A stretch of 64,000 nt of DNA from positions 48,174,001 to 48,238,000 of the forward strand of contig OZ241829.1 in the NCBI GenBank assembly GCA_965202585.1. Direction: 5' to 3'. Below the pieces are notes generated by a model. It saw only the letters and a program-made list of their open reading frames with translations, was not told the DNA's origin and searched no databases. Shown one piece after another: positions 654-63,570 of the stretch (the first letter of the stretch is position 1; each line of letters starts with the position of its first letter). This DNA comes from Thalia democratica (Eukaryota). A program made the translations under genes and the position numbers.

Positions 654-775
654 TGTCCTGGACAAGACGTTAAAAGGTATCCAAGTGGTGTGCGACTCGA
701 TAACCGAAAGGTTTTTTCGTTCATCAGGTCTTAGGACCAAATATTTTGAGTGATTTTATTTTTGTCGTTTAATAA
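654..775 (+). repeat. Structured ~120-bp repeat family, copy 1 (full length)
   Basis: TGTCCTGGACAAGAC...GGTGTGCGA-CTCGAT-AACC-GAAA-GGTT-TTT-TCGTTCATC-AGGTCTTAGGACC-AAATATTTTGAG-T-rich-GTCGTTTAATAA; aligns by eye with six other copies. Confidence 0.9.
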
Positions 776-3075
776 ACAATATACTTACTATTATAGAAAA
801 TAACTATAACAAAATAAATACTTTTTTGAAAAATTTAAGTTCATTTACTTTTTGATATCTTCTATGACAATTCTGCCATGAATTATTTATTAAATATGTT
901 GATTTAACTAGGATGATATACGCATGATAAGAACTCCTAAAAAAATACACAATAACTGTAACCTCTCATTGAAGATGCAAACTAATGACTTAAAAAAGTA
1001 TATTGTGAAAATAAACCACGTCATTATACAATAAGTTTAACTGATAAAAGTAAATTTGATTTTAAGTAGCAGATTTTTAAATAATTGACAAAAGTAGAGT
1101 AATAGTTCTGATCAAAATTTTTTTTGTTTAAATCAAAGCTTTAAACCAGCGACTCTTAACAAAGGTAAATTCCTTTGTTTTAGGGGTAAATTTTCTTAAT
1201 TACAAGTTATGTAAATTAATGTTTATTAATTGTCTTTTTAATTTACAAGTCAATATTTGACTTTAATTTTTCTAAAGTTAAATAAAAACTTTAAATTTTA
1301 CGAATTTTTATGTTTGATAAGCTTAAAGTCTAAGAAATCTAGTTTTTTCCTCAAAAAAAAAACACTCTTTTGTATACTGGGAGTAAATTTGGTAACAACC
1401 TTCCAAAAAGGGGTAAAACATGAAAAAAAGGTTAAGAACGGTTGCTTTAAACGAAAAAAGATAATGGTTGCATAATGTTTTAAAACCATCAACAATTAGT
1501 AAACATAAATAAACTATTTGACCCAATGTTTGCAAATACTTTTGTTGACTAAACAAAAAACATTAATTATTATAGTTTAAGTCAACCAGTGCGACATAAG
1601 TCTATAGTTTTAAATGAGTTCATGGTCATTACAAAAATATTTTATGTTAATTCATTATCATCAAATCTCCTGAGTATTAAACTGTTTTTAAATTTATAGG
1701 CCTATTTAAAGATGCATTGTGAATTAAGTCAAAGATTTCACATAAATAATAGTGAAAAAGTTTATTTTTTTTATGGCACGAGTAAAGTGTTGCAATATAT
1801 TTTCTGCATAAAATTAAATAAATAAGTATTAAACATTAGTTAAAACTAAATCTTGTTGATTAATAACAATGTAAGGTTGTGATAAAATTAATTTTAAAGT
1901 TTAGATTTTCTAAACAAAAAATAAAATGATTATAGTAAAAAAAATGTTTAGTTTTTACTTTTTGTATCTTTTAACCAAACTAAACGTATACTTTATTTAA
2001 TGCAGTTTGATTGGCATATACAAACAATATCAATATGAAAACTTTAACACCATATGGTTTTGTATATAAGAAATATACTAAAATATAAGATTGGTATACA
2101 TATGTTTTAATTATAACAAAATCTTCAAAGTTCTCTAGTTTACTTTCACTATCAATTGTAACTATTTTCATCCTGAAACTTCAACAGCATCTTACAAGAC
2201 CGAATTTTTTTAAAATTTGCAAGTAAAAAGTTACAACCTAAAAGAAACGAGAGATAACTGTAAAAAGTTTTATTTACTTTTACTTATCATGTCACTAAAT
2301 GTTAATAAATAACTTACTGTGACGTTATCTAACTTTTAAATGTTTCTCAATTCAAAGTAAACCTTTTACAAATCAGATGTACACAAACAATTATTACAAG
2401 CTATTAAATGAACAAGAAATGTGAAGCGTTTTGTCTTTATTAAAGCTTTACTTTTCAAAACAGTTTAAATACTTTCTTTAATAACAGCAATAATTTATTG
2501 ATGACAAACGAAAGCACAAACAGTTTAGGCTTTTTTACAACTCTTCAGAATAGTGAGTTTTGTTTGTTTTATTTAATAATTTGTTCTTAACTAATATTGT
2601 TGTAACTTAATTTTAAAATACCCTAGTATAAACTTATATTGATAAAGACTATATTTTAAGTAAGTATAAGCTCTTTAGTATAATACTAAATATTTTTATA
2701 GTCATTTTATGGCAATCTGTTTAAGATATAGTAACTTTTAAAAGTAGTTTTGTTATATTCAAATGATGTATTTAATGATGTTCTTTTTCAAAATTAACTT
2801 TATTTTATTAATAATTCATGAATTTATTCTCTCAAGAAATTATTTTACAAACTAAGTTTCAGTCAAAGACCTCGTCAGTGCTTAAATAATTCTTATCCAA
2901 GTAGTTGAGATCTCTTTATTTGTTTTCTTAAAACCAAAACATATAATATTAATAATTTATTGATAATATTTAATTCAAGAACATTTTTAAGTAAAACTAT
3001 TGGTCAAGATAAAAGTGTTATTGGAGTGTATTTTGATAGTTTATTATGATAATATTCTGTTCAGATGCATTTTCT

Positions 3076-3190
3076 TGTCCTGGACAAGACGTAAAAAGGT
3101 ATCCGTGGTGTGCGACTCGATAACTAAAAGTTTCTTCGTTCACCAGGTCCTAGGACCAAATATTTTGAGCGTTTTTTTTTTGTTTAATAA
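3076..3190 (+). repeat. Structured repeat family, copy 2
   Basis: Same 5' boundary TGTCCTGGAC, central hairpin, GGTCCTAGGACC palindrome, ATTTTGAGCG then T-run. Confidence 0.9.
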
Positions 3191-4274
3191 ATTATGGTAA
3201 CCATGTGATCCAAATTTAAAAGCCTACTTTCAAGCTAATTTTAGAAATCAAATATTTTGTTATAAGTATTATACTTTCGTTTATGTTGAAAATTTTTTGT
3301 TCTTATTTTTAAATATACTGTAAGATATTTTTGAACAAGCTACAAACTTTTATAGACAATGAAAATGTAAGTTTAATTGAGAAAAACAACGATGTTAGAA
3401 TATTTCTGTACACATACGGATTTGTTTTAAAAATTTGTTCTATGTATTTACTTACTGCAATGGCTTACTTTCAATATATTACAAACAAAAATGAAACCAA
3501 ATCACAAAGAAAAATATCAAAGAAAAGCGACTCTAGATTTAAAAAAGGTAACGTTTATAAATCAATATCAACTATATGAAAATTAAAGCTTCACTTAAGC
3601 GAAACTTTATATCTGCAATAAAATGTTTATCAAAAGTCAATCATACCAAAATAAACTATATACTAGATAAAATATTTACAATTAAAATCTAATTTATCAT
3701 TGAACAGTTCACATTGTTACAAAAACTTTATTTTTATTTTTATTTTTATTTTTTAGTGAAACTTATTTAGATCTTTTGTTTTTTATTTTAATTTTTTCTA
3801 AAAAACAAGTTGATTACACTATGATGTTCTTATAAATTCACTATTTGTTAAATCTATGTTGTAACTTTCGTTTTTATATTTTTGTTTTTAACTTTTTAAT
3901 TGACTTACTTCCATAAAATTTATACCATAGATTTTTGAAATTAACTTAACTATGTTAAATTTGAAAGTTATTACTTATATAGTCAAGTAACAGGTAATCA
4001 AAGTTTACAATTTTTTACAAAATATAACATTAAGTGTCAAAAATAAAAATAAAAGATTAGAGTCACCTTGTACTTAGTTTTAAAAAAATATTGTAAAGTG
4101 CGTAGTTACGCGACAATATATTGTTGTTAGCACTTATAATAAAATCGTGCTGCCCTTTATACTTGATTGAGGTATAGATTAAAAAACTTTAAACAAAGTT
4201 TAATCATGGCACACACAAAAAACTAGTAATAGTTGCTTAAAAAAGGTTAATTATGTAAAAATAAAAGCTATAAT

Positions 4275-4394
4275 TGTCCTGGACAAGACATTGAAAGGTA
4301 TCCATTGTGTATGAATCGATAAACGAAAGGTTCTTCGTGCACCAGGTCCTAGGACCAAACATTTTGAGCGTTTTTTTTTTTTGTCGTTTAATAA
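4275..4394 (+). repeat. Structured repeat family, copy 3
   Basis: Same 5' boundary, hairpin, palindrome and T-run. Confidence 0.9.
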
Positions 4395-4592
4395 TTTAAT
4401 AGCTATAATGATATCAATTAAAGTTAAAGATCAAGTAAAAACTAATAATAGCATAAAATTAGACTCCAAAAATAACTCGACCTATATATCAAAAAAACAA
4501 CAAGTCAAACAAAATAAGTTTTAATATAAAACCACAATACCAACTGAGTTCAGTCACGGAATATTTCTCAGTGTAACTAACAAATCACTACT

Positions 4593-5213
4593 GTCGAATT
4601 TGCACTAGCGCACAAAATTGCACGAAGCACAAGCAAACAATTTTGCACGGAGATATTTTTACACGGGTTAATTTTTTTTAATATATACATAGTTTTTTTT
4701 CCAATATTTTTTTTTCTTTTTTTTTTATCACTGTTACTCCTTACCATAGATCAATAATTTTTTTTTTAAATTAAATTTTCTATTTTTATTACTATTTTTT
4801 TTACTATAACTGTTACCCCTAACCCTTATCCTCGGTCGGTAGCCTTTTTTTTATTAAATTTGTTAATTTAATTTAACTTTTATTTTTACTATCATTATTA
4901 CCTCTAACCCTTACCCTCGGTCAAGGTCTAACTTTTTTTTTTTAGTTTATCTTATAGTTATTTTTTTCTGTTTATATTACTTTTTATTTCTGTTTTTTTT
5001 ACTCTCGTGCAAAAATGTAACACGTGCAAAATTGACCTTTGGTCCAAAATTGTCTTCGTGCAATTTTGTGCTTCGTGCAAATTTGTCTTCGTGCAAAGGT
5101 ATCTTCGTGCAATTTTGTGCAATCGTACAATTTTGTTTTCGTGCAATTTAGTCCTAATGTGCAACTTAATAACCTCGTGCAGTTTTGTCTTCGTGCAATT
5201 TTGACCCGTTTCC
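4593..5213. mobile_element. Non-autonomous TIR element with inverted arrays of a ~15-bp unit (CTTCGTGCAATTTTG); Mutator-like MITE
   Basis: CAAAATTGCACGAAG units at ~4595-4660 face CTTCGTGCAATTTTG units at ~5005-5203; right end GACCCGTTTCC; left end degraded, no TSD found. Confidence 0.6.
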
Positions 5214-5457
5214 ATTTTACTATTTAAATATTATTAACTTTTTTTATACATTGTTTGCCGTAGTATTTACCTATTAGAATAGTACTTTTTCAACTTTTTG
5301 CTCATTAAGCTACTTTAAAAATTAATATTTATACAACGAGTATTATAAACTTTCACCCAACTTTTTACTTTAATATTCTATTTTTTCTGTATCACTTGTC
5401 AGAGTTCTTCAATTTGATAATTTGTCTGTTAATAACAATGACCTATCTACTTATACG

Positions 5458-5545
5458 GTGGTGTATCACTCGATGACTGAGAGGTTTTTTCGTACACCCA
5501 GGTCTTTGGACTAAAAATTTTTTGAGCATCTTCGTTTTTTGTTAG
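5458..5545 (+). repeat. Structured repeat family, copy 4 (5'-truncated)
   Basis: GGTGTATCA-CTCGAT-GACT-GAGA-GGTT-TTT-TCGTACACC hairpin followed by GGTCTTTGGAC and TTTTGAGC. Confidence 0.8.
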
Positions 5546-7317
5546 TTTTAAATAAATATATATAAAAGTTTATAATTAAAAACACCTACTTGCCTACACA
5601 AAGTCTTAAAATATTATTAATTATTTAATGTACAAAAGTTTTATACTTAAAAAAAAGTTTTCAGTTCTAACAAGTTTTTTTCATTATTAAAACTTTGTAA
5701 ATTTTTATTCGTGTACGTGTATGCGAATAAATTTTACTTACACTAGTTACAATGATCGATACTAAAAAATTGGCAGAAAATAAAATTCAAGCGGAAAGTT
5801 AAATTTAGTCTACATAGAAAGTATCACAACAGAATTTTCAGTGAAATAACTGTTACTAACTAAGCAGGATTTGTTTGTTATGTTGAAAATTCTAACTTGT
5901 TCTACTTTTGGATTTATATGAGTCTTATGTTTGTACACTTGCATTTGGATAAGAAAGTTGCTTCCACCGCGCTTAAAATTTTACTAATTTTTAAGACATG
6001 TTGTATGTAAAAGTAGTACTACTCTAAAAACTTGACATTACGAGTAGTTTAGTGATTACAAAAACACTTTTTTGAGCTATATAATAGAATATTTCTAATT
6101 CTTAAAATAGTTAAAGTCAAAAAAAACGAAATTAAATTTTATAAAAAAAACAATGAAATATAAACATATATTTAACAATTTAAATCAAATATTTAAAATA
6201 TGCTTTAAAGAATTAAAATATGACATATTAAGTTTTTATAATTGTAAAATTTGAATTTGAAATAAACAAAATTAGAAAAAAACAGTACAAATTAGTTTAA
6301 GCTTATACAAACCAGTGTTTATGATTTTTTATAAAGTTTATCGCTAATCGATTTTTTTAAACTGCAAAAACTCTACAAAGAGTAACCTTTTTAAACTAGT
6401 GCATATTAGTCTGTACAAACTCTTAATGACACTAACGTTGTTTTATCCCACTGTCTATCAATACAGTCTTTACATTTTTCATATAAAGAGTTTTTCTGAA
6501 ACAATTTAATCACTACTATTTTTTTCACAATCGGTGTAGCTCAGATACATGTAACCTTAGTTTTCTCTCAAACCATGACCGAAACTATGTTTAGCAAGTA
6601 CCTATTAGTGTCGTTGATTTTTGACCGCATTTCTTATTGTAGAATTTCCACGAAGGCCTGATGGATCAATTTTTTCAAGAATTATTTTTGTTTAATTTTT
6701 TACAGTCCTACAAAGAACAGCTTTTGCAGCTTTCAAACTTTCCCTCTTTAAATGACCAATATTACTAAATTTTGATAAACACTGATATTTTCTAACCTCG
6801 AGTTTAAAACGTGTCGATCTCAAGACATAAAAAATTGCTTACAAAAACCTCAAAACACTTTTTTTTTCATCCAAAGAAACTTATTTAAGTATGTTATTAG
6901 TAGTTTACTGTATGTGTTCTAGCCTGGGAAAAAAAGTGAGATTTTGGTTTAGTTTTTTAATTACTCTAATGTCAATACACACTTGAATTGTCTTAAAAGC
7001 ACTCTAGCTAGATCTAATAAACAAAAATTACACAAGTTGAAAATAAAAATATTTCAGTTCTAGTGTTCTCATACTAATTTTCTGACTTTTCAGTAGCTCT
7101 CTACCATTAAAAAAGGCAATAAACTATTTATTTTCTGTAAGGTAGTTTACCTAATTTTGTGTAGTTTTAAATCACATGCTAATTTTAATGTTAAAAAATG
7201 CAACATTTTTGGACAACTTTTGACTTTAAAAAAATCAAAAATTTGCTGCTTTTGAACTTACCTAACTAATGTGTGTTTTATTATTACAACTTGAATTATA
7301 AACATGAAACAAAACAG

Positions 7318-9680
7318 CTCTAAAATGGAAACTGAATGAGTTTTGTCTATTGACATGTTTTTTCGGATTTCTTACGAGTATGATGGATTCACCGATTGCC
7401 TCTTTAAATAAAACATCAAATTTGGCTTGCAAAATTTTACAAGTTAGTTAAAAGATTATGTTGTAAAACACGTGATTACTAACTAAAAACAAATTAGTAA
7501 TAATAATGGCATGCTTAACTTTTTTTTGATTAAATATAAGAATTGATATTTTTAGAAATATAGTACTTTACAATTCTATTCTTGATATATTTTTTTTTTG
7601 CTAAGAAAATGGCTCGTTAATAATTTTAAATACTTTTTTATTTTAAAAGTTTTATCGAATCAAAAACGTATGTGTTGTAACTTTTTGTTATCTTGATTAT
7701 TAAAATAAAAAATGAAGCATCAATTTAAATTATACCGCAAAGTATTTTTTCTATAACTAACTTTAAGTTGCGTTTTTGTTTTTCACACGACGACATGCAC
7801 AATAACTTTTTTAAGGTTATAACACAAACGCTTTATAAATATTACCAATCGTTTTTTCTCAAAATGTACGAACTTTTTTTTTGTAAAGTATTAAATTAAA
7901 AAAATATTTAAATTACATATATATAGTACATGATATTATAGCATATGCAGTTATCTTTATAAACAATTTTAAATCGATAAATTATGAGAAAAGATAAAAC
8001 GATTGAAACTAAAATGCACTAAAGCATTTTTATTTTATAAGCTTAGAAATTATTCAAAAACTGCATAGGGAGCATCAACATTTTTGTATTCTTTGGGAAC
8101 TCTTTCTTTGTACATATTTTTGTGGTTGAGGCAGCGAGCTTGTTATAGAAACAGATCACTACGTGTTTTGCAAAGTCGTCTTACCAACTTACTAAGCAAA
8201 TTTGTATTACCTATCTACATTGCCCTAAAAACTGTAGGTAGTATCATACTGGTTTAACTTGTAGTAATTTCTATTAAAATATATAAAGTACATATTTACA
8301 AAAATCTAGTAGGCTTCTTTTAATTTTATTTACAGCTACTTAATTCCATTTCTATGTTTCTATATATTAGTACAAACGTCAACAAAACTTTATAGAACTT
8401 TTGTCTGAAAAAATAAAAACTATTTAATTAACTAGTTTTAGTCCGGATCAAGGGTGTCGCGTGAAGTGGAGCATTGGAGTAGATGCTCTACCTAAAAGAT
8501 ACTTAAAAATTATCACAATGTTTTAAAATTGAAAAATATTTTATGCTTTAAATAAAATTTTGTATACAAACGATTTGTTATAGTACTTTTATCTTGCTAA
8601 ACTAGTTTTACAAAATATCAAACTAGGTTTTTTTTTAATACTTGTGAATTTTTGGCACCCCTAACAAAAACTTCACGCGTTCCCATTGGTCCGGATCGGG
8701 ACTCATTGTTTAAAAAAAATATTTAATTTTGAATTGCTTATTGATAAACAAAAATAAACACTAAAAATAATTCAGATATATAAATTAACTTTTATTAAGG
8801 GTTAATTATTGTATATAGTTAGTTTAAATATTTTGTTTTATTCAAAGTTTTTACTCATTTAAAAACTTAGCTCATCTAAGTTGTTAACATATAATCATTA
8901 TCAGGGATTATTTTGACTTGTACAGTCTGGGATTTTGAAACAAGTCTAGAAGGATGCTTGGAAACTTCTCACTCTCAAACGCCTATAATTGTTATGTACG
9001 TGGCATCGGTAGTAATGCACTCTGTTCTTTTAACTTTATTTCTCAAACCTCTCAAACACCATATTTCTTTCGCACCAAAAAATTTAAATATTTCCGATGG
9101 AATGTGAGTTTTATCATATTGTACTTTAAACCGGCATTTCATTTTTGTACTGTATATATTTTACAGCTTACTTAGTAATTTTTAATGTAATTTTTTTTTA
9201 ATGTATATTTAAAATACTCAGTCAAATATATATTTAAAAGTATAACTTATGCATCAAAAAAATAAAAATAAAGTTTTGTTATGCAGTAAAGGTAAAGATA
9301 ACCGGTTAAAGAAATTAGTACGAAGATGTGTTATATCTACAGCTTTATGTGTGGCAACTGATACATTATCTTTCATAGTATCTATGGTGATACCATCAGA
9401 TTTGATAACAAAATCAATTGTTATCAATTACATTTATGATACTGACTTGATCTTAAACATAGTTTTTATTAACGGATCGTTTGCTAATTGGAACAAGAGA
9501 CTGTGGCCTTGGAAACTAAATTCAACTATTGATGAAATAGACAACAATGTTGACTACGTTTCAACTATGACACGTTCGTCAACACCTGCAGCTTCGGCTC
9601 CTATTGCTTACAAACCAATTAAAAAAGTTAACAAAGATGAAAGTATCGAAAATAACCAGGAAATAATTTTTGTTAACTAA
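7318..9680 (+). CDS. Orphan seven-transmembrane GPCR-like protein (TM2-TM7 and C-tail; 5' exons unresolved)
   Basis: Phase-consistent GT-AG exons 7318-7442, 8069-8237, 8905-9103, 9287-9680 read ...LTCFFGFLTSMMDSP..NLACKILQ|GASTFLYSLGTLSLYIFLWLRQRACY...IALKTV|GIILTCTVWDFETSLEGC...|...RRCVISTALCVATD...YDTDLILNIVFINGSFANWNKRLWPW. Cys at the top of TM3 and in ECL2, and hydrophobic helices at 7TM spacing. Confidence 0.75.
8441..8696. mobile_element. Small MITE in GPCR intron
   Basis: Imperfect inverted ends GTCCGGATCAAGGGTGTCGCGTGAAG / CTTCACGCGTTCCCATTGGTCCGGAT. Confidence 0.55.
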
Positions 9681-11294
9681 AAAAACTAAATCTATTTACT
9701 ATTCTGAACTATTACTAAACTGAATGAAGGCTGAGATAAAAACATTATAAATTTTAGCGACGAGTTGTACTTATGAATTTATTTTAGACTTGCATATATA
9801 GTAATTCTACAAGAACCATACTTTAAATGTCTATCTAGGTGAGATGAAACCAAAAAAGCATCTTCAATTATTTTCTAAAAAAATTGTTACAACGGATTTG
9901 AATTTTAATGAAATTAGTAATAAAATTAGTAGTGCACAGATATTGCAAGAATGTTTAATAAATCTATTTTTGAAAGAATTGAAATTAACTCATTTAAAAT
10001 TTTGATAAAGTTAATACAAAAACTTTATATCAATTTTGAAACACTAAATGTAATGAGATTATTATAATGTTATCAACAGTTTGAGAATATTTTTAAGATA
10101 TATATATAAAACTGGATAGCATAAAGTTTTCCTTTATCTATTTATAAAATTATCATTGTTAATTTCATTACGTTTATGTACTTATGTGGTTCACTAAATT
10201 TTTACTTTTTTTTTGGTCATAGAAACACGTTTGAATATTGTTTTTAATTTTTTTTTAGAACTTTTTAGTTTAACTTCAAACTAACTGTAGTTATAACTAC
10301 TGGTGCTTCATTTTGTTTATTTTGATATAAAAGCTGTTCGCAGTGAATTTTTTCAAAAATAATAGCATTTACACTTTTCAAGTAGTTAAATGTAATTGAA
10401 AAGTACGAAAAATCTTACTTTACGATAACTTGCTTAAAACATATATTTTCATATGAATGAATTAAAACATATATTTATAAACAATTATCTGTATATATGA
10501 AATTGTTTAAAAATAGTACGCATGAATTTTTAAAACATTTTAAAAAATAAATTAAAAAAGTAAGTAAGTATAACTTGAGTTAAAAAATATAAAAAAACCT
10601 TTATTTATACAATACACAAGTATTTTCTTAAGCAGTATTACGTATATAAATAAATATTTTTATGTAGATTCATAGTTTGATTCATTCAAGTTTGATTGGA
10701 TGACTATTGTATGTAACTAAATTATATCATTTGTTAACTATTTACAAATTTTATTTTTTGATAACAAACGCAGATTTATCTACAACTAACAAAACAAAAC
10801 TACTTCTTCAAAAGCTTATCTGTCGAAAAATTGTATATTTAAGTTCATTAAAATTTATAAACTCAGTAATTTATTTTTAAAAGTTATTAAACAACTCTAT
10901 ATAGTTTTTTGATTTAACATTTACCAATATAGAGAAAAAGCTATTTCAGTTATTTTTTTAAAGTTTCAATAAAAATATTTAATACAAACTATGTTATAAA
11001 CCAGTTCGGTTTGTTTTTTTGCTCTAAAAAAAAACCTTTAAGAAATAACATTTTATTTACAATTTTTTTAAGAATGATATTTTGTCATTTAAACTAGTCT
11101 TAAATGTTAATTTGAGCTTGTCTCACGGTATATGTAATACCACGCGTTGACTCTGTTAGACTCTCATTGATGTTTTCTTTAATTGTAAATAATACAATAA
11201 TAATAATCTAACAACAACAATAAAATTAAAACAACTAGTAAATGCATCTAAAATAGCACAGACTTACTACTAGACACTTTTTTGTATTACTTCA

Positions 11295-13112
11295 GGGTTC
11301 GTGCGCATCAGGCTAAATCAGTTTTTTTGGTAAAAGTTGAAAAACATCAGGCTAAGTCAGTTTTTTTAGTTAAAAATTTAAGAATCTAAGTTTTTCTCAG
11401 TACAAATGCTAGAAAACTATTGATTAAAATAATTGAGAAATTTTTTTAAAGAAAAAGAAAAAGTTATTTCTAAATATAAATTTAATTATATAAAAAAAAC
11501 AGTCAGTATCTATTAAAACAAAAGTTCTATTTTCTATTTCTGAGTTTCTAATAGAAATTTAAGTATCTTTTTTACCTTGATTTGAGTAGATTATTTACGT
11601 CATGATTATGAAAGTTTATTAAGAATTATACGATTTAAACATTACATTCAAATTCAGACAATTCAAATTCCGACTATTTAAATTCTGATTTATAAATCAA
11701 AACTCAATTGTTGATTTATTTTGATTTTTTTTTTACCATCATTATTATAATAATCAGACCTATGTGTGCATTTTTCTTTTTTTGAAATTCAAACTTTTTG
11801 TCAAGATATAACTTGAAACTTTAATTTTTTTTTTACTATTCTCTTAATAAAGTTTTTATTACAAGAATAATTTATATTTTATTTATTTATTATCATATTT
11901 TTTTTAATCAAATCTATGTACCTGTTTTTATTACTCTCAACTTCAGTTTATGTTTAGAAATCTAGCTAATTTAAACAAATCTTTAGAATTTGAGTTGTAA
12001 GAATTTCAATTGACCTAATTTGAATAGTCATGTAACCTAACAGCTAAATTACATCAACTTAGCTGTTGGTTTGAATTTGTTTACATCAGCTATGTTTTTC
12101 AAAGCTTAGCTAGTTTAATTGTTATATTTCCTAAAATAGAAACTCAATACCAAGTACACTTTAGACTAAAACTCATAGCAGTTTATTAATAATATGTTTT
12201 ACTGTTTGTTTATTAAAAATTATTAACAAGACTAACACATTCTGAACACAGCAGCTACTTACTAGAGTTTGTAACTAAGAATTTTTAGTCTTAATAAAAA
12301 GTATACTGACAGACTTTTTTTTAACTTGGTTCAAAATTTTGTAACTAATAAAAGATTCGTACAAAATTAGGGGAATTACTTAAAGATAAAAATGAGGGAA
12401 TTCTAGTTCAAATGATGTATATTTTACTAAAACTAGCATAGGTTTTCATTAGTTAAATAAAAAAAAACTACCGGTAGTTTAATAATAAAAATTATGGTTT
12501 AATTTAAAAAACTTTATTAAATATAATTGTTTTTTTTAGCCACAAATAAGAAATAAATTCTACAAATATTGGGAGTTCTGTAACAAGGCCAAATAGTATG
12601 AAATATTAACAGTTGGCCAAAAAATATTACAGGGCATTTATTCACATATTAATATGAATATTTAAAAAACAATTAATTTTTCAAATTCGAAATAATTCAA
12701 AATTGATAACAAATCTCTTTTTTTTCTAAGGGGCCCCACACTAAAAGTCAAACACCAACCCAATGGATTTTTTTTAGTTAAAAGCAAAGGACCGTTCTCT
12801 AGAATACAAAAAAAAATTAAATAGCTAACAAGATAAGGAAAACAATTGGGTCCAAAGTTTGGACATTTTAAAGATTCTTGAAAAACGTTATCAAGCCAAC
12901 TTCACACTTGTACTAAAATGTGTACTTAATGAAAGTGCGTAACATAAATGCGTACTTTTCAAAACATGCATATTAGAAATGCGCGCTCAAAATTCGTATT
13001 TAATGAAAAGTGAGTACTAAAAACAAGTATATAAGATGGAGGTAAACATCAGGCTAAATCGGTCAAATTTGTGAAATATCAGGCTAAATTTTTTTAATTT
13101 GCGCACGAACCC
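11295..13112. mobile_element. ~1.8-kb non-autonomous TIR element
   Basis: Perfect 13-bp TIR GGGTTCGTGCGCA / TGCGCACGAACCC; subterminal (C/T)ATCAGGCTAA repeats at both ends in the same orientation; both flanks share TTACTTC (degraded TSD). Confidence 0.75.
11641..12037. mobile_element. Mutator-like MITE (CAATTCAAATT family) nested in the 1.8-kb element
   Basis: Left ATTCAAATTCAGACAATTCAAATTCCGAC repeats; right end AATTTGAATAGTCATGTAACC matches the element at 35253-35684. Confidence 0.6.
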
Positions 13113-13132
13113 AGTTACTTCTACTACAAAAA

Positions 13133-13182
13133 CAGGTCCTACGACCAAACATTTTTAGCGTATTTTTTTGTCGTTCAATGAA
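13133..13182 (+). repeat. Structured repeat family, copy 5 (3' part only)
   Basis: CAGGTCCTACGACCAAACATTTTTAGCG-T-run-GTCGTTCAATGAA. Confidence 0.7.
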
Positions 13183-14065
13183 CTATACACATATATCACA
13201 AGTAATAAGGTATAGTCGTCTTCCATAAATTAAAAAAGAATTTAATGTGGTCACTGGTTTTTTAATTTCTTTTACGTTTTTATTTTATGCCAGATTTTGA
13301 AAGTTGCTTTTTTTTTTGACGATGTAGCCTATTTATACGGTAGTTTATTTACTTTCAAATTTGAATTGTCGAAACTTAAACTGTCATGCTACCGCAAAAC
13401 ATATCTGATATTCTACTTTCAGAGTGTTAACTCACTCAATCTTGAACTTTTGAAATAACAAAATCCACAGACTTTTTTAAATTTAAAATAATAATTTCAT
13501 TTAATGTAAAAAACCGCAAAACAAAACTAATTCAAAAAGTTACTACGTTAAGTCTGATAACTTTTGTTCTGAAAGGAGTTTAATTTTTTTTTTTTTTAAA
13601 TTCCCATATTTTGTATTCAATCTCATAAATTTAAAAGAATTCGTACTGACATTATTGCCTTAATTTTATTAAAATTACTCTTTACTATAAAAAACAATAC
13701 TTTATTTAGAAAGTAATTTACATGTTCATAATCTACTCAATGAAAAAAATTAGAATTAAGAAATTTAAAAGTTTACAGGCATTTGAACTTACAAAAATTG
13801 ACATTTTTACAAAAAACTGACTTATCCTGACGTGTACAAATCCTGCATACAGCATTTTTTTTAAATTTCTTAACCTTTCCTCCAAATAATTTTTTATTCC
13901 ATTATATCATTTATTAAAAACAAGCAAGTAACTGAGAAGGGATCCTGCTATTAAATAACTTGTACGTTTAAGTTTTCTATCAACATTTTAAGAAATGTAG
14001 CTTCACATTAAATATACGTATTACTATCATTTTTAAAAGAACAAAAAGTATAAAAAAATTTAGAC

Positions 14066-14295
14066 CAGGAGTCAGCAAACTTACACAAATAACGGACCTA
14101 ATTAAGAAAATACACTTTTAGTTCATTTGTAAAATAGAAAAAAAATGGTATAATTGCAAATGATTAATAAAGTAGTAATTAAATTAGTACCCTTATTTTT
14201 TCAATTTAATTTACTAAATAAGTAAATAACTTTTTTCGCATAAGATAAATCGCGACCCGGATATTTCCGCATAACTTATAGTTCGACGACTATTG
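14066..14295. mobile_element. Degraded hAT-like MITE
   Basis: CAGGAGTCAGCAAACT / AGTTCGACGACTATTG imperfect ends; flanks ATTTAGAC / CTTTAGGT (weak 8-bp TSD). Confidence 0.35.
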
Positions 14296-15460
14296 CTTTA
14301 GGTGAGCATATTTTATTTTGCTTTGGTCGAACAATACATAAACTATTTATGAATTATTAATACTTTGAGGTAGTCATATAGCTTTATGGTTTTTAATTCA
14401 ACCACCTTTTAGTTATTTATTGAGTGAAAATGATTCAGTTTCACAGTTAATTAAGTAAAAAACTAATGTTTTGCAAAATACTAACCAAAAAGTAAGTTAG
14501 AGCGGAAAACTTATTCATGTGTGTTTCTTATTTTTTGAAATTTTGAAAATTTTAAGACTTACGATCAATTTAAATTGACATTAAATATTAGCTTTTTTAC
14601 GTTTGTTGTTATCAATAGTTTTTTAAAATATGATTTGCAAAACTTATCACTTACTATAATTTACTTATATTTATACAACTTATCTAATCGAGTAGTACTA
14701 CCAACAAGATTTTATGAAAAAAAGTAAACGTTATTTAATTAAATTTTAAGTATGAATTTAAAAAATTTGAATAAAAACTTCTACTCATTTAAACTTTATT
14801 AGATATATAAACAGAAACATAGAACATTTTGATGTAAATAAAACTATAAGATGATCTTTAATCCAAAAACACATTTAAAACTTATTTTTTTAAATAATAT
14901 TATCAAAAAAAAGTAAATGGTAAATATTGTTAACAAATTGTAAAACTAATGAATTTTAAATATACTTTGAACGTCTACTATTTTCAATAAAGCTAATTCT
15001 TCCAGAAGAGTTTTTGTCATTTTCACAGCCCCAACATGTCTCCTAAAAATACAGACTAAGCTTTAGTTAAAAAATTAAATTCGAACAAAATATTTACAAC
15101 ATAACTGTTAATTTATTACAACTTATAATACTTTATCTTTTTTAGGTAGACTTAACTAAGCATATTTTAAACACCCCATAGTCTAATTTTAGTACAAGTA
15201 GGAAAAAGTTAAAAAAAAAATTACAGAATATTATTTTCCTTAATAATTACAATTCTAAAGTCATTTAAAATTTGCTCTAAGACAAAACTATCAATATTTC
15301 ATAGGCAGTGATATTTATTTTGATATAAAGTATTCAAAAAAATTGAGAGCTAAAATGATTTTGCTATTAGTTGTTGAATGTTTATAAGTTGATTTTTATT
15401 AGAAACTATAAGACTACCGTTAAATTTTCTATCTAAATTTAGTTTTAGCTTTGATAGTAC

Positions 15461-18400
15461 TTAATAATACTCGTCAACAAATAAACAAAAACACTTTACA
15501 TTAATTTCAGTCCAACAAACAGAGCAGTAAGGAATACCACAGTTATCTTTTTCACAATATATTAGAGGAGCTTTGTCTTCATCTGGTTCACCACAAACTA
15601 TGCATATTTCTCTTCCGATATTAAACCAACCGCAAACTGTTTTCACGCATTTATATTTTGAACACATGTCTCGTAAAAAGGAATATTTTCGCTGCAAAAA
15701 TTAATATTAACATATCGCTTTATTTTTTATGTATTAAGATACACTTAACACTACTACTTGTTGTATATATTTTAATTCTCTAAAAAACTACTTTGAGGTG
15801 AAACGACACAGCAAGTCTTTCAACAACTTTCTGAGTCTCCTCAACAAAGTTCTTCCTTCTGCCAAGCATTCTGTTATACAAATAAACAACTCTACGCTTT
15901 TCTTGCCTTCTGAATGAAAATCCCGCAATTTTGTGGCGGATTCTTGAAAAATATGTATCTAGAACCAAGCTTAACAGCAATACTGAATAACCGAGCGATA
16001 TTTGTATTACTAAGCTAGGATCTAACTTTTTAGGAGTTGGTAGACAACCTAATAAATACAGTATACTTGAATTATTATTACATTGTAATACTTATCAAAA
16101 ATTTCTGTTTTTTATAAACTTAATGAAAAACTAAGAATCAATAACTAAACTGTTTATAACTGTTTATAACTATTTAAATATTAAAAAACCCTTTTAAACT
16201 GCCAACTAAAAAAGTTTATTTCTACTTAAAAAAAAACTTCTTTTTTTGTTTGCATTTATTTAAAATTATTGCATTTTAAACACAAACCTTTATGTTTGTT
16301 TTTTGATTAATATTATTTCATGTTACTATAGGTTACTTAAGCTTTAGTTGTTAACATAATATAGAAAATGACTTACCAAGATTTGTTGTTGTGGAATTTA
16401 GGTAATGTTCATTTTCTTTAAAAGGTTTGAACAACTGTTTTAGAGTTTTAGCAATAGAACCATTTCCCTTTACGTTGACTGTGTTAATAGTTTAAATATT
16501 ATTAAGTTAAAATTTACAGAATTATTTTGTTAATAAGTTTATTATATACGAGCAACATTTTAATTCATTTAAATCAAAAAATGTTCTTGCCCTGGACAAA
16601 ACATTAAACTGTATCCGTGGTGTGTGACTCGATAACTAAAAGGTTTTTTCGTATACCAGGTCGTTGGCCCAAACATTTTGAGCGCTTTTTATTTTTGTAG
16701 TTTCATAAACAAGTATTTTATACATTCATACGTACGTAACAAATTTCAAAACTAGTTTACTCTATCATATATTTTAAAATAACACGGAAACATTCTTTTT
16801 AAAGCATGTAAACTACACTAAGCTTATTCAAGATAAATAATAATAATAAATAACAGGCCTGCTATCAGCTTAAAATAACTATGTGAGTTCTGCTCAAAAG
16901 TAAAAGTTTTACTAACAAAATTTATTATCTGTGTTACAAAATTTGTCTAAGTTTATTGTTTGGTAAGGATTGATAGGATTAGCTATAAAAATTGAACCGA
17001 AACTTCAAAAGCTTTAATATAACTTTTTACAAGCCGTAACACTTAATACTGCGTGAGAACGGTAAGATTTTATTTTAAATTTATAATTTAAATCTATTTA
17101 TAATGAATGTTAAACAAGGTGACGGATGCAAATATAAGTCGCTTCTGATTGGCTAATATTTTACTTTTTTTATTTTAAGTTTTTCCTCCTAAAACTTTTT
17201 CTCACGACTCTTTATTTTGGTTAGGTGGGCTAGAGATAAGGGTATAGATATTCTTAATATACTGCTGTATTATTACTTTACCTCATTTGCATAATGTTAT
17301 GAATGAAAATTTTCCGAAACCTTACAACTGCAGCCGACCCTTATACAAGCGGCTAAAAACTACTTTTAACACCTTAACTTAGAGATGTTCTTTTAAAACA
17401 ATATGAAAACTTGCTTTAAACGAGTAGAGTAAAAAAGCGTTAATGGTCTAAATTAAAGGATAAAAATAAGAAATCTAATTCAAAACTAATTAGTAAAAAA
17501 TAGTGAATGAAACAAAATTTGTACTTTTATAAAGATTTTAAATCAGAGATGAAGGATTATAGCAACCAAAGATTATTTTATTTTATAAATAAAATTACCT
17601 AGACGTGATATTTTTATTTTCTTTTTTCAAATCCTACCAAACAATCAGATGAAGGGTTATAAAAGGTAAAAGAAACAAAATAAAAGTCATCATGATAATT
17701 TTATTATAGTTTAAATCATTCAAAAACTTTAGTCTAAAACCTTTTAGTTTACTTTCTTAATTAGATATACATTATGGACCAACATAAAAACATATTCTAT
17801 CAGTTAGCTTCACTAAGCTTAACATGGTTTTTTTTTTTTTTTTGCTTTTTAAACCTTAAACAAAACTATCATACAATAAATTGTTTATTGAACGAAAAAA
17901 AAAAGCGCACAAATATTTGGTCCTAGGACCTAGTGTACGAAAAAACCTTTCGGTTATCGAGTCATACACCAGGATACAGTTTAAAGTCATGTCCAGTACA
18001 GGAATTTACCAAATGGGCGTAAATATTGATTAAACTACCTAACAAGAGGTACCATAGTATATTCAATCTTATTACATCAAACACTTTTAACAGTGTACAT
18101 AACCGAATGCTTTGAGAGTAGTTAAATTTGATTACAAACATTTTTGTAATTTATGAGTCGTTAGCGTCAACAACGTTGAGAAATTTTAACTTGATTTGAA
18201 TTTTATGCGCTTGTGATCTAATTTTTTAAATAAACTTAATATTTTATATAAAATACCTTTGTTTATTAACTTTCGATTAAAAACTATTTCAGCTATCAAT
18301 AGAAAAACGTAAATTTAAAGTTGATTTTTTTTTTAAAGAACATGTCAAACTTTTTTTTTTTTTTTTAAGAGGTAAAGGTTTAGAAGCACAGTCATCAAAA

Positions 18401-38132: not shown

Positions 38133-40559
38133 AAAAAAAATGTTTAGTTTTTAACAATTTTTTTTTAATCTTAAATCTTTATTTTTTATTAACTTTTGTT
38201 TTTGTTTTGTTTTTTTTTTTTAATTAAAAAAACAGGGATTGAATACCTATAAAAATTGAACGATTTTTTTCACTTTCTGCATGAGTTATGCAATTACTGT
38301 ATAACTCTTAAGTTATCTCGCTAATGAATGTTTAAAATTAATTCCACCTTTTATTATATGTTAAATTTGTTTTTATTAAACTTAATAACATAAATTATTA
38401 TTTTATTTTAATGTTACGTAACGTATGCGTATCATTAAAACCACGCAGGCTTTATGATACAGCCTAGATGGAATATAAATAATGTTATGGATTATTTTAA
38501 TTTTTTGATTTTTACATATTTAAGAATTTGTTTTTCTCAACCTTGATGAAATAGACAAAACTGATGGTTTCTGGCTAAACATCTTTTTTCAAATTTACTT
38601 TTATTTTCATTATATATTAAATTGTTTTAACTTCTGAAAAAAAATATAAAATTTGAATTTATCACTTGTTTTAAGTTTTTCAAAAATAATTTCTTTAAGA
38701 AATACAATGACAATAAATTCACTTTTTACAACTTAATACTTTTATTTACAACCTTTAAACTGTAATTTATTTAGATGAATTATTATTAATTTTATTAACA
38801 ATTTTTTATTAATCATGACTCAAGACAATCTAATTTTAGGAAACTGTAGATGTAGTATTTATATACGCTAGTTTAACGTTAAACTCAATCTATGGTAAAC
38901 AAATAAAACGAAACTAAAACTATAAAATCGATAGTTCTACTTATTAAAAATTTCAATGTTGTAATAAGTAAATTTTATTTTGCTATCATATTTAACTCCT
39001 AAACAACTTTTATTGATTAAAAGTTTTTTGCTCGCTAAAGATTTTGTCTATATAGTATTTTTTATTAATATTATCTTTTGCAAGCTATAAGAACTGTTAA
39101 TAATATATCCACTCAAGCTTTAAAAAAATAAAATCAACAGTTATACTTTGGTCCAGGCATGTCATTTTTCAGTTTAATAATTTTATAAATACTAACCTAA
39201 AATATTCGAACCGAGTATTTTAAGTTAAAACTTAAAATCTTAATATGTTTATGTTATTTAGTTGGCATAAAAAACATAAATATTCTGTATTTTATACGGA
39301 AATTAATATTTTGTTTAGTACAATATTTCATTACTACCTTAAACACTTAGAATACTGTTTATGATATTAACAGTATGTTATTTTAATAAGAAAACTTGTA
39401 ATTTTGTTAAATTTAATCGATATTAAATATTAGTTTTAATAAACTTTTTCATCTTTACAAATAATATTGATTTATCAAAATTTTCGTTTACTTAAAAAAT
39501 GTTTCTACGTTTAATAGGTTAAAAATTCCGATAAACAAAAGATGTAATTAATTAGTTTTGAAAAACATGTTCGTCCTTTCTATGTTTCGAGAGATTTAAG
39601 AAATCCATTTTAGTCAAAACCTGGATAAAAATAAGAAACTAAATGCAATTTTTCAAACATTACAGAAAACTTTTAATAAAACAAACCTTAAAAAATGTAT
39701 GGATAATAATATTATTAGTTTACTTACATTATCAATTTTGAGAATATAGGGGAAAACAAACCATTGTCATTCAGTAGAAAAATCAAAGATTTTACTAAGA
39801 TTTTACTGAAAATTTACACAAAAATCTTGAAATATTTTTTTTTAACATATTGACCCCTCGGATTTAAGTCTTGAACAAGAAATTAAACTGTATTAGTGGT
39901 GTATGACTCAATAAATAAAAGGGGTTTTTGTACATTAAATCCCAAAAAAATGTTTCAGCACCTATTTTTATATTGTTTAATAAATTATATACTAATCTTG
40001 CAAACTTCAACTCAGAAAGTTTTTAAAGCTGTAATATGGATCCCTACCTACATCACCAGGATCATTGAATTTTTAGTTTTATATAGACAATGTTGTAAAA
40101 TTGTTTTTATTTTGTATATTATGTGTCAGCCCAGGATTCCAATCTTTCAACGTTTTGGAGAGTTAAACTGTTGAGTTGTTAAACTGATAAGTTAAATAAT
40201 TTAGATTGTTTAGTTAAAATGTTTATTTTTTTTTATATGTAGTTTATATATTGTTTACTGCAAGATCAAAACCTAGTAGTAAACACTAACAAAATAAATA
40301 TCAACTTAGTACTAACTAAAATAAAATGAATCTTCTTTTTTAGCATACAAGTTATAATTGTATTATAGATTTTTAGTCAATAATCTAGGATGATGTTGGA
40401 CCAATATCAAGCTGAATTTAATAATATTCAATTTTTTTTAAACCAACATAAGCTATATTTATATTTTATTAATACATATATTGTCTTAAAATATAAGGAT
40501 AAAAAATTATGACAAAAAAAATATGTAAAAACAATTTTTTTTTAAATTTTTTTATAAAA

Positions 40560-44849: not shown

Positions 44850-63570
<18,721 letters not shown>

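Follow-up and report, generated by a model that had tools for sequence, protein, structure and literature searches.

A short non-coding repeat family of Thalia democratica with a strand-specific folded signal, probably a LINE-dependent retroposon

Repeat copies in the window and across the genome

The stretch of DNA analyzed here, referred to as the window, comprises 64,000 nucleotides of the genome of Thalia democratica (assembly GCA_965202585.1, contig OZ241829.1, positions 48,174,001 to 48,238,000 of the forward strand), and its first 18 kb contain several copies of a short repeat that had remained unassigned in an initial annotation. Repeat detection, alignment, and profile search recovered all seven copies listed there, each at the place given for it (Table 1), and five of them share the 5' end TG(T/C)(C/A)CTGGACA. 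The accompanying statement that none is present in the other 46 kb failed, because a diverged eighth copy is located at 39868; a ninth, likewise detected by profile search, lies immediately to the left of the window (L001:745-821). Since the flanks of the window copies are unrelated and their subfamilies differ, they represent independent insertions, and copy 654 is bordered by sequence that occurs nowhere else in the genome. The description of the copies as clustered holds only weakly: the local density is about five times the average (seven in 18 kb), and the family is genome-wide with near-Poisson counts. Such an enrichment is expected in some of many windows scanned and is a local excess rather than a gene cluster.

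Table 1. Positions of the repeat copies, of the parts of copy 654, and of the matching motif in prokaryote- or phage-like contigs (window coordinates unless a contig is named)
Feature	Position	Strand	Remarks
Full-length copy, youngest subfamily	654..782	+	129 nt, TGTCCTGGAC...AATAAACAATAT; 90-94% identity to 40 other copies
Full-length copy, older subfamily	3076..3197	+	10.7% from young consensus
Full-length copy with target-site duplication	4266..4409	+	Copy at 4275-4400 inside perfect 9-bp duplication AGCTATAAT (4266-4274, 4401-4409)
Short form	5457..5556	+	Hairpin and tail; 5' part unrelated
5'-truncated copy	13132..13190	+	From consensus nt 71; 3' 58 nt only
Full-length copy	16588..16715	+	16.7% diverged
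Full-length copy, reverse orientation	17878..18000	-
Old copy	39868..39990	+	32.5% diverged; missed by the initial annotation; profile search match 39868-39987, E 4.6e-10
5' subterminal palindrome GTCCTGGAC	655..663	+	Read from sequence; able to pair with second palindrome
Central hairpin	687..725	+	Loop and apex form the most conserved block of the family
Second palindrome GGTC(C/T)TAGGACC	727..738	+	Sequence, alignment
AUUUUGAG, then weak 3' stem GAGYGA/UCGUUY around T-rich loop	743..770	+	79.6% of cells paired
3' tail AATAAAC(AAT)(AT)n	771..782	+	End point variable; junction comparison
Motif places, first set	L052:597-620, 1078-1101, 1782-1806; L053:3471-3497; L055:602-632; L056:2674-2700
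Motif places, second set	L057:3-28; L058:1805-1830; L059:6268-6290; L060:2064-2085; L061:1286-1307; L062:149-170

In the AT-rich 802-Mb genome, a first-look search produced 4,101 candidates for the element, and every large contig carries copies; the 40 best of these 4,101 candidates are 90-94% identical and are distributed over nine large contigs (C1, C2, and C4 to C10) and two small ones. A random sample of twenty 10-kb pieces (200 kb) contained 14 copies, i.e., approximately one per 14 kb, with counts per piece close to a Poisson distribution. Extrapolated from this 200-kb sample, the genome total would be roughly 50,000 copies, which at about 129 nt each corresponds to approximately 0.8% of the genome. 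The summed contig depth over copy 654 was about 578,000, compared to about 73 in neighboring single-copy DNA (approximately 7,900-fold). Divergence from the young consensus ranges from 4 to 35% among copies, indicating that the family has long been active, without very recent copies. Ten extra copies were present in the 81 kb around the seed copies, which amounts to a modest clustering. The initial annotation had named the presence of thousands of dispersed copies as an observation that would speak against its proposals; tens of thousands with graded decay were found. The element is thus high-copy, dispersed, non-coding, and shorter than 500 bp. A full copy is also present on a marine metagenome contig of 24% GC (L054:3153-3277), where it adjoins a 406-bp repeat found many times in the T. 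democratica genome at 90-92% identity. Other repeats of this genome match L054 at 85-92% identity, and a related species, as the source of this contig, probably carries the family too.

Several further features were noted in the window and among the loci compared. Beside the copies, positions 2801-2900 and 4600-5200 of the window belong to two other repeat families, with depths of approximately 20,000 and 26,000 times the single-copy value, respectively, exceeding the depth of the element; the family at 4600-5200 features many CGTGCAAAATTG-like short units. A long open frame at window positions 49519-51690 contains the PRO8NT and PROCN domains of the spliceosomal protein PRP8 and is a marker of the right part of the window, which bears genes and is higher in GC. 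Three pairs of the 30 best loci are segmental duplicates with 94.6-99.1% identity over 3 kb (L007/L012, L011/L025, and L014/L021); recent large duplications are common in this assembly.

Architecture and strand-specific fold of the element

Alignment of 34 further copies together with their flanks delimited the repeat to a unit of 129 nt. The consensus reads, from 5' to 3', (T)GTCCTGGAC, the central hairpin, GGTCCTAGGACC, AAAUAUUUUGAGCG, a T-rich stretch, GUCGUUC, and the tail AAUAAACAAU(AU). The central hairpin, with the strands GGUGUGCGA/CUCGAU/AACC-GAAA-GGUU/UUU/UCGUGCACC, consists of a 9-bp lower stem with a tandem U-G/G-U, an internal loop CUCGAU/UUU, and the apical AACC-GAAA-GGUU. All of the parts described initially, namely, the hairpin, the palindromes GTCCTGGAC and GGTCCTAGGACC, the AUUUUGAG motif, and the T runs, were found, and they form the best-kept columns of an alignment of 52 copies. 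In this alignment, the internal loop and apex ACUCGAUAACCGAAAGG are the least variable part across every subfamily, as expected of a signal that is recognized by a protein. A canonical AAUAAA lies a few bases from the 3' end of the element; poly(A) is absent from the copies.

The initial annotation had proposed that the hairpin is conserved by wobble pairs and by covariation, and of these two components the former was borne out by the 52-copy alignment, whereas the latter was not. Two-sided covariation, the lack of which had been named initially as a point against the proposals, was not significant, with 18 cells changed on both sides versus 10.9 in shuffles in which partners were swapped among the sequences of the alignment, and with 87.9% of cells paired versus 86.9%. 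A possible outer stem, in which the 5' palindrome pairs with columns 81-90 (the second palindrome), likewise gave no covariation signal, with 88.8% of its cells able to pair. At Watson-Crick positions of the central hairpin, however, one-sided changes leading to G-U clearly outnumbered those leading to A-C (58 versus 12). The same holds for the weak 3' stem (25 versus 7), whereas the second palindrome is without strand bias (8 versus 10); summed over all stems, 91 G-U and 29 A-C combinations were counted. Neither C>T nor A>G changes were in excess in unpaired columns, and the youngest copies already display the bias toward G-U (17 versus 3). Folding of the + strand, as suggested initially, is therefore supported, and the presence of the bias in stems without a corresponding bias in unpaired columns implies that a variant could spread only if its + strand still folded. 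RNAalifold predicted no consensus structure for the 52-copy alignment, and the fold energies of single copies were not unusual (z from -0.5 to -2.1). What appears to be preserved is the fold of one strand as a transposition signal, which tolerates wobble pairs and features a near-invariant internal loop and a GAAA apex; such a folded signal would be a usable handle for tracing the partner reverse transcriptase. A bearing on host small-RNA biology is not evident.

The initial annotation had further considered that the repeat might be an RNA polymerase III (Pol III) transcript, an Sm-class RNA gene, or a spliced-leader gene, and none of these readings gained support. A search against Rfam, including the tRNA, 5S, and 7SL models, gave no match at the gathering score over the window, nor at E<=1 on three loci. 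A run of six T residues is located within the central hairpin, with T4-T5 runs downstream of it, and since these runs would stop Pol III, transcription of the + strand by this polymerase is unlikely. With the exception of a T immediately preceding the element, the flanks of the 30 best copies were conserved at background level; as the flanks are not conserved, the copies share no upstream promoter. Three apparent leads were discarded. On the reverse strand, the candidate Pol III box GGTTATCGAGTC is merely loosely B-box-like, and the wobble bias assigns the fold to the other strand. The sequence CUGAUGA on the reverse strand of copy 654, reminiscent of a hammerhead ribozyme, is a private change of that copy and not part of the consensus. 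Finally, a sub-threshold Rfam match to the plant microRNA precursor MIR6140 in L002 is an artefact of two head-to-head copies. Note that these two copies (L002:1501-1833), which are 88 nt apart, form a long inverted repeat that is a trap for hairpin screens.

A variant of the spliced-leader proposal would regard the dispersed copies as retro-pseudogenes or SINEs (short interspersed nuclear elements) of a functional Sm-class or spliced-leader-like RNA, of which a few master genes are still active. The 5' 23 nt, at AAAAG|GUAUCC, would then be the leader exon (ending GACAAGACGUUAAAAG, GUUAAAAG), and AUUUUGAG would be the Sm site. Spliced-leader RNAs (SL RNAs) are composed of a single-stranded 5' part with GU, stem-loops, an Sm site, and a 3' stem, and the layout of the element resembles this order, with AUUUUGAG located between the stem-loops and the 3' stem. 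This motif and its flanks are well conserved, in keeping with a candidate Sm site, and tunicates perform trans-splicing (PMC5174732). Against this, Rfam remained without a match even at the permissive threshold, the sequence upstream of the 30 best copies is not conserved, and the short form without the supposed leader has spread equally well. Moreover, a scan of metagenome contigs with a 20-nt leader probe retrieved one full element copy (L054) and no junction of the leader with an mRNA. We therefore regard a descent from such RNA genes as very unlikely.

Ends, flanking repeats, and mode of spread

The 5' edge of the element is sharp: in DNA contigs from two samples, other copies stop matching copy 654 at position 654 (312 contigs) or 655 (156 contigs). 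The first T is absent from a third of the copies, and both ends are slightly frayed. In copies with flanking repeats, the 3' junction is located 7-13 nt, and once 21 nt, past the start of AATAAAC; in one case it follows an (AT)8 run. In an unselected set of copies, half were full length, and all 16 partial copies retained the 3' end, starting at consensus nt 25-44 in 13 cases and at nt 64-79 in three. The 13 copies starting near the hairpin, with unrelated sequence upstream, may correspond to a 100-nt short form.

Exact flanking direct repeats of 5-8 bp, counted when they were at least 5 bp long, abutted the 5' end, and began at the 3' end of the element, were present in 6 of 30 independent young copies versus 1.17 expected (permutation p 0.001, a value weakened by the fact that the offset window was picked after viewing the data); other offsets showed no excess among these 30 copies. 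Two further copies possess repeats of 9 and 11-12 bp with one change each, so that the flanking repeats overall span 5-12 bp and are variable in length. A duplication of fixed length, including a hAT-like one of 8 bp, was rejected, as no signal was obtained at fixed boundaries. A resemblance of the 5' flank to the element's own 3' end, perceived by eye, was not supported by the position profile. For this profile, the 40 best copies had been chosen for their resemblance to a query sequence extending over the T at 654 and three bases of the flank, which inflates T at position -1 and the final 3' positions; the unbiased frequency of T is 67%. At one locus, comparison with an old paralogous site that lacks the element revealed that 85 nt have given way to the insertion; the 5' junction shows microhomology of TGTC and the 3' junction of TATATAT, a pattern that fits repair-type joining without being decisive. 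A search for empty sites retrieved L054, which matched other repeats only, and contigs of two DNA runs, which break at the repeat.

Because the 3' end is always kept, the ends are frayed, and the flanking repeats vary in length, we read the family as retroposed, and the repeat is probably one old family of a short, non-coding, non-autonomous retroposon that depends on a long interspersed nuclear element (LINE). According to this scheme, RNA of the + strand would be transcribed, with Pol III being an unlikely polymerase. The 3' 100 nt of this RNA would form the GAAA-capped hairpin, another short hairpin, and, ahead of AAUAAAC(AU)n, a weak stem at the terminus, and the folded 3' module would be recognized by the reverse transcriptase of one of the many LINEs of the genome. 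The RNA would then be copied into nicked chromosomal DNA via target-primed reverse transcription, giving rise to a variable 3' end, occasional 5' truncation, and short variable target-site duplications or small target deletions. Of these steps, we infer that an RNA intermediate exists, that a reverse transcriptase recognizes the hairpins, and that a LINE acts as partner. Reverse transcriptase genes are plentiful: 4,142 candidates were counted, and intact frames of 992 aa are numerous. Repeats account for more than 80% of published salp genomes, and RTE and CR1 predominate among their LINEs (PMC10686999); such a content would suit a LINE-dependent element. The SINE reading of the initial annotation comes closest to this picture, as the element behaves like a LINE-dependent retroposon, but a recognizable Pol III head is missing.

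Several observations weigh against retroposition, in addition to the late choice of the offset window mentioned above. A partner LINE with the same 3' tail was not found among the LINE pieces L044, L046, and L051 and the unassigned long open frames of L047, all of which were dissimilar. Lacking a Pol III-type head and containing internal T runs, the element is no textbook SINE. Approximately 24 of the 30 young copies are without a detectable flanking repeat, possibly because duplications were short, failed to arise, or decayed, or because small parts of the target were deleted. The 13 partial copies beginning at nt 25-44 may represent a separate short form instead of random truncations, which limits the evidence from truncation. 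Furthermore, the wobble tolerance would also fit a single-stranded DNA intermediate, and the layout of the palindromes is similar to that of a group of rolling-circle elements, as described in the next paragraph. In the course of the partner search, a LINE with a single 992-aa frame, the size of endonuclease plus reverse transcriptase, was noted (e.g., C7:60984472-60985107, L051:3-2810). Judged from its many intact copies, this LINE could still be active, and no relation to the repeat was seen at its 3' end.

The rolling-circle alternative, raised initially, assumes that the repeat is a Helentron/HINE-type element whose ends are nicked by an HUH Rep/helicase and whose + strand moves as single-stranded DNA, with the subterminal palindromes and the 3' hairpin serving as recognition and stop signals. 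Published HINEs possess palindromic subterminal repeats of 12-15 bp located 2-4 nt from the 5' end and 38-60 bp from the 3' end, as well as a small palindrome 8-35 bp from the 3' end (PMC4067079). In the T. democratica element, GTCCTGGAC occupies nt 2-10, i.e., 1-2 nt from the 5' end, and GGTCCTAGGACC and a small palindrome end 45 and 12 nt from the 3' end, respectively, both within the published ranges. The lack of detectable duplications in most copies, the enrichment of T directly before the element (67%), and the strand-specific G-T/G-U bias would be compatible with this mechanism, and Helitron families, too, typically combine a conserved 3' end with 5' parts that vary. The agreement is thus one of palindrome layout, and it does not extend to target-site repeats, termini, or a Rep/helicase partner. 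Specifically, variable flanking repeats are significantly enriched, including a perfect 9-bp one at copy 4275. Published HINEs are located in T tracts, with TT(T)G as their start and T runs as their end, whereas the element ends with ...AATAAACAAT(AT)n; instead of insertion into TT with terminal T strings and without duplication, a single T alone is enriched. The subterminal repeats of the element measure 9-12 bp with one indel compared to 12-15 bp in HINEs, and the second palindrome is devoid of strand bias. First-look searches of the 802-Mb genome yielded no match to Helitron_like_N (PF14214) and one match to PIF1 (PF05970; C9:25279563-25280111), which is located in an uninterrupted 618-aa frame and is probably a host gene. 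On balance, we consider rolling-circle transposition unlikely.

Alternatively, the family could be an unrecognized DNA-mediated element, for example MITE-like (resembling miniature inverted-repeat transposable elements), with subterminal palindromes and a novel transposase or recombinase. By their sequence, GTCCTGGAC and GGTCCTAGGACC may be protein-binding sites, the copies are modestly clustered, and the 5' 24 nt of the element match exactly a motif that borders conserved blocks in bacterial contigs. In its cut-and-paste form, a MITE was ruled out by the absence of terminal inverted repeats (TGTCCTGGAC versus ...AATAAACAAT) and of a fixed-length duplication. The consistent retention of the 3' end in partial copies also speaks against such an element, and cut-and-paste movement of double-stranded DNA would not give rise to the strand-specific wobble bias; DNA-mediated transposition of this kind is improbable in our view.

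The motif just mentioned surfaced in the scan of metagenome contigs with the 20-nt putative leader that had been made for the spliced-leader test. Apart from L054, the hits comprised six unrelated contigs of prokaryote- or phage-like character (37-67% GC), in which a 22-27-nt motif is identical to the 5' 24 nt of the element (GTCCTGGACAAGACGTTAAAAGGT, window 655-678). The shared motif, (C)GTCCTGG(A/G)CAAGACGTTAAAAGG(T/C)C, corresponds to nt 2-25 of the element and was further present in one IMG/VR contig and in three bacterial metagenome-assembled genomes assigned to Desulforudis, a Clostridia bacterium, and Chamaesiphon. It is intergenic and positioned just after small open reading frames, with three occurrences in L052; L053 and L061 share a 282-nt block, 87% conserved, whose left boundary coincides exactly with the motif. 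The motif and block had no match in Rfam, a phage collection, or a plasmid collection. For a database of this size, a chance identity over 24 nt is roughly estimated at one in a hundred. If the identity is not due to chance, the head of the element could be a nicking or recognition site shared across kingdoms, pointing to a new kind of non-autonomous element or a horizontally acquired end. The animal element would then not be an ordinary retroposon; we assign this scenario a very low probability.

Comparison with known systems

Taken together, the element, unclassified to date, is most likely of a familiar type, i.e., an ordinary selfish repeat with a strand-specific folded signal, and not a small-RNA gene family. 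With HINE/DINE-1 elements (PMC4067079), it has in common that it is non-coding and high-copy and features subterminal palindromes at the published distances as well as a small 3' palindrome. It differs from them in being 129 nt long, compared to several hundred nucleotides or more with central repeats, in lacking T-run termini and TT-tract targets, and in possessing duplications; neither a Rep nor an amplified PIF1 was found in the first-look searches of the genome. With the genes for SL RNAs and Sm-class small nuclear RNAs, it shares a GU after a short 5' segment, stem-loops, and a U-rich AUUUUG between stems, but in contrast to these genes it is present in tens of thousands of decaying copies, its 5' segment is dispensable, and there is neither promoter conservation nor an Rfam match.

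The closest resemblance is to LINE-dependent SINEs, in which the reverse transcriptase of the partner recognizes a 3' stem-loop tail, as exemplified by UnaSINE1/UnaL2 of the eel and by SINEs mobilized by CR1 or RTE elements. The T. democratica element deviates from these in that it has no head of the tRNA, 5S, or 7SL type and contains internal T4-T6 runs, that duplications are detectable in a minority of copies, and that no LINE with a homologous tail was present among the pieces examined. Like them, it is short, non-coding, and abundant, and it combines a 3' stem-loop module with a short, microsatellite-like tail that is not poly(A). It also shares with them varied 5' parts on one 3' module, 5' truncation, duplications of variable length, and a wobble tolerance of the RNA type.

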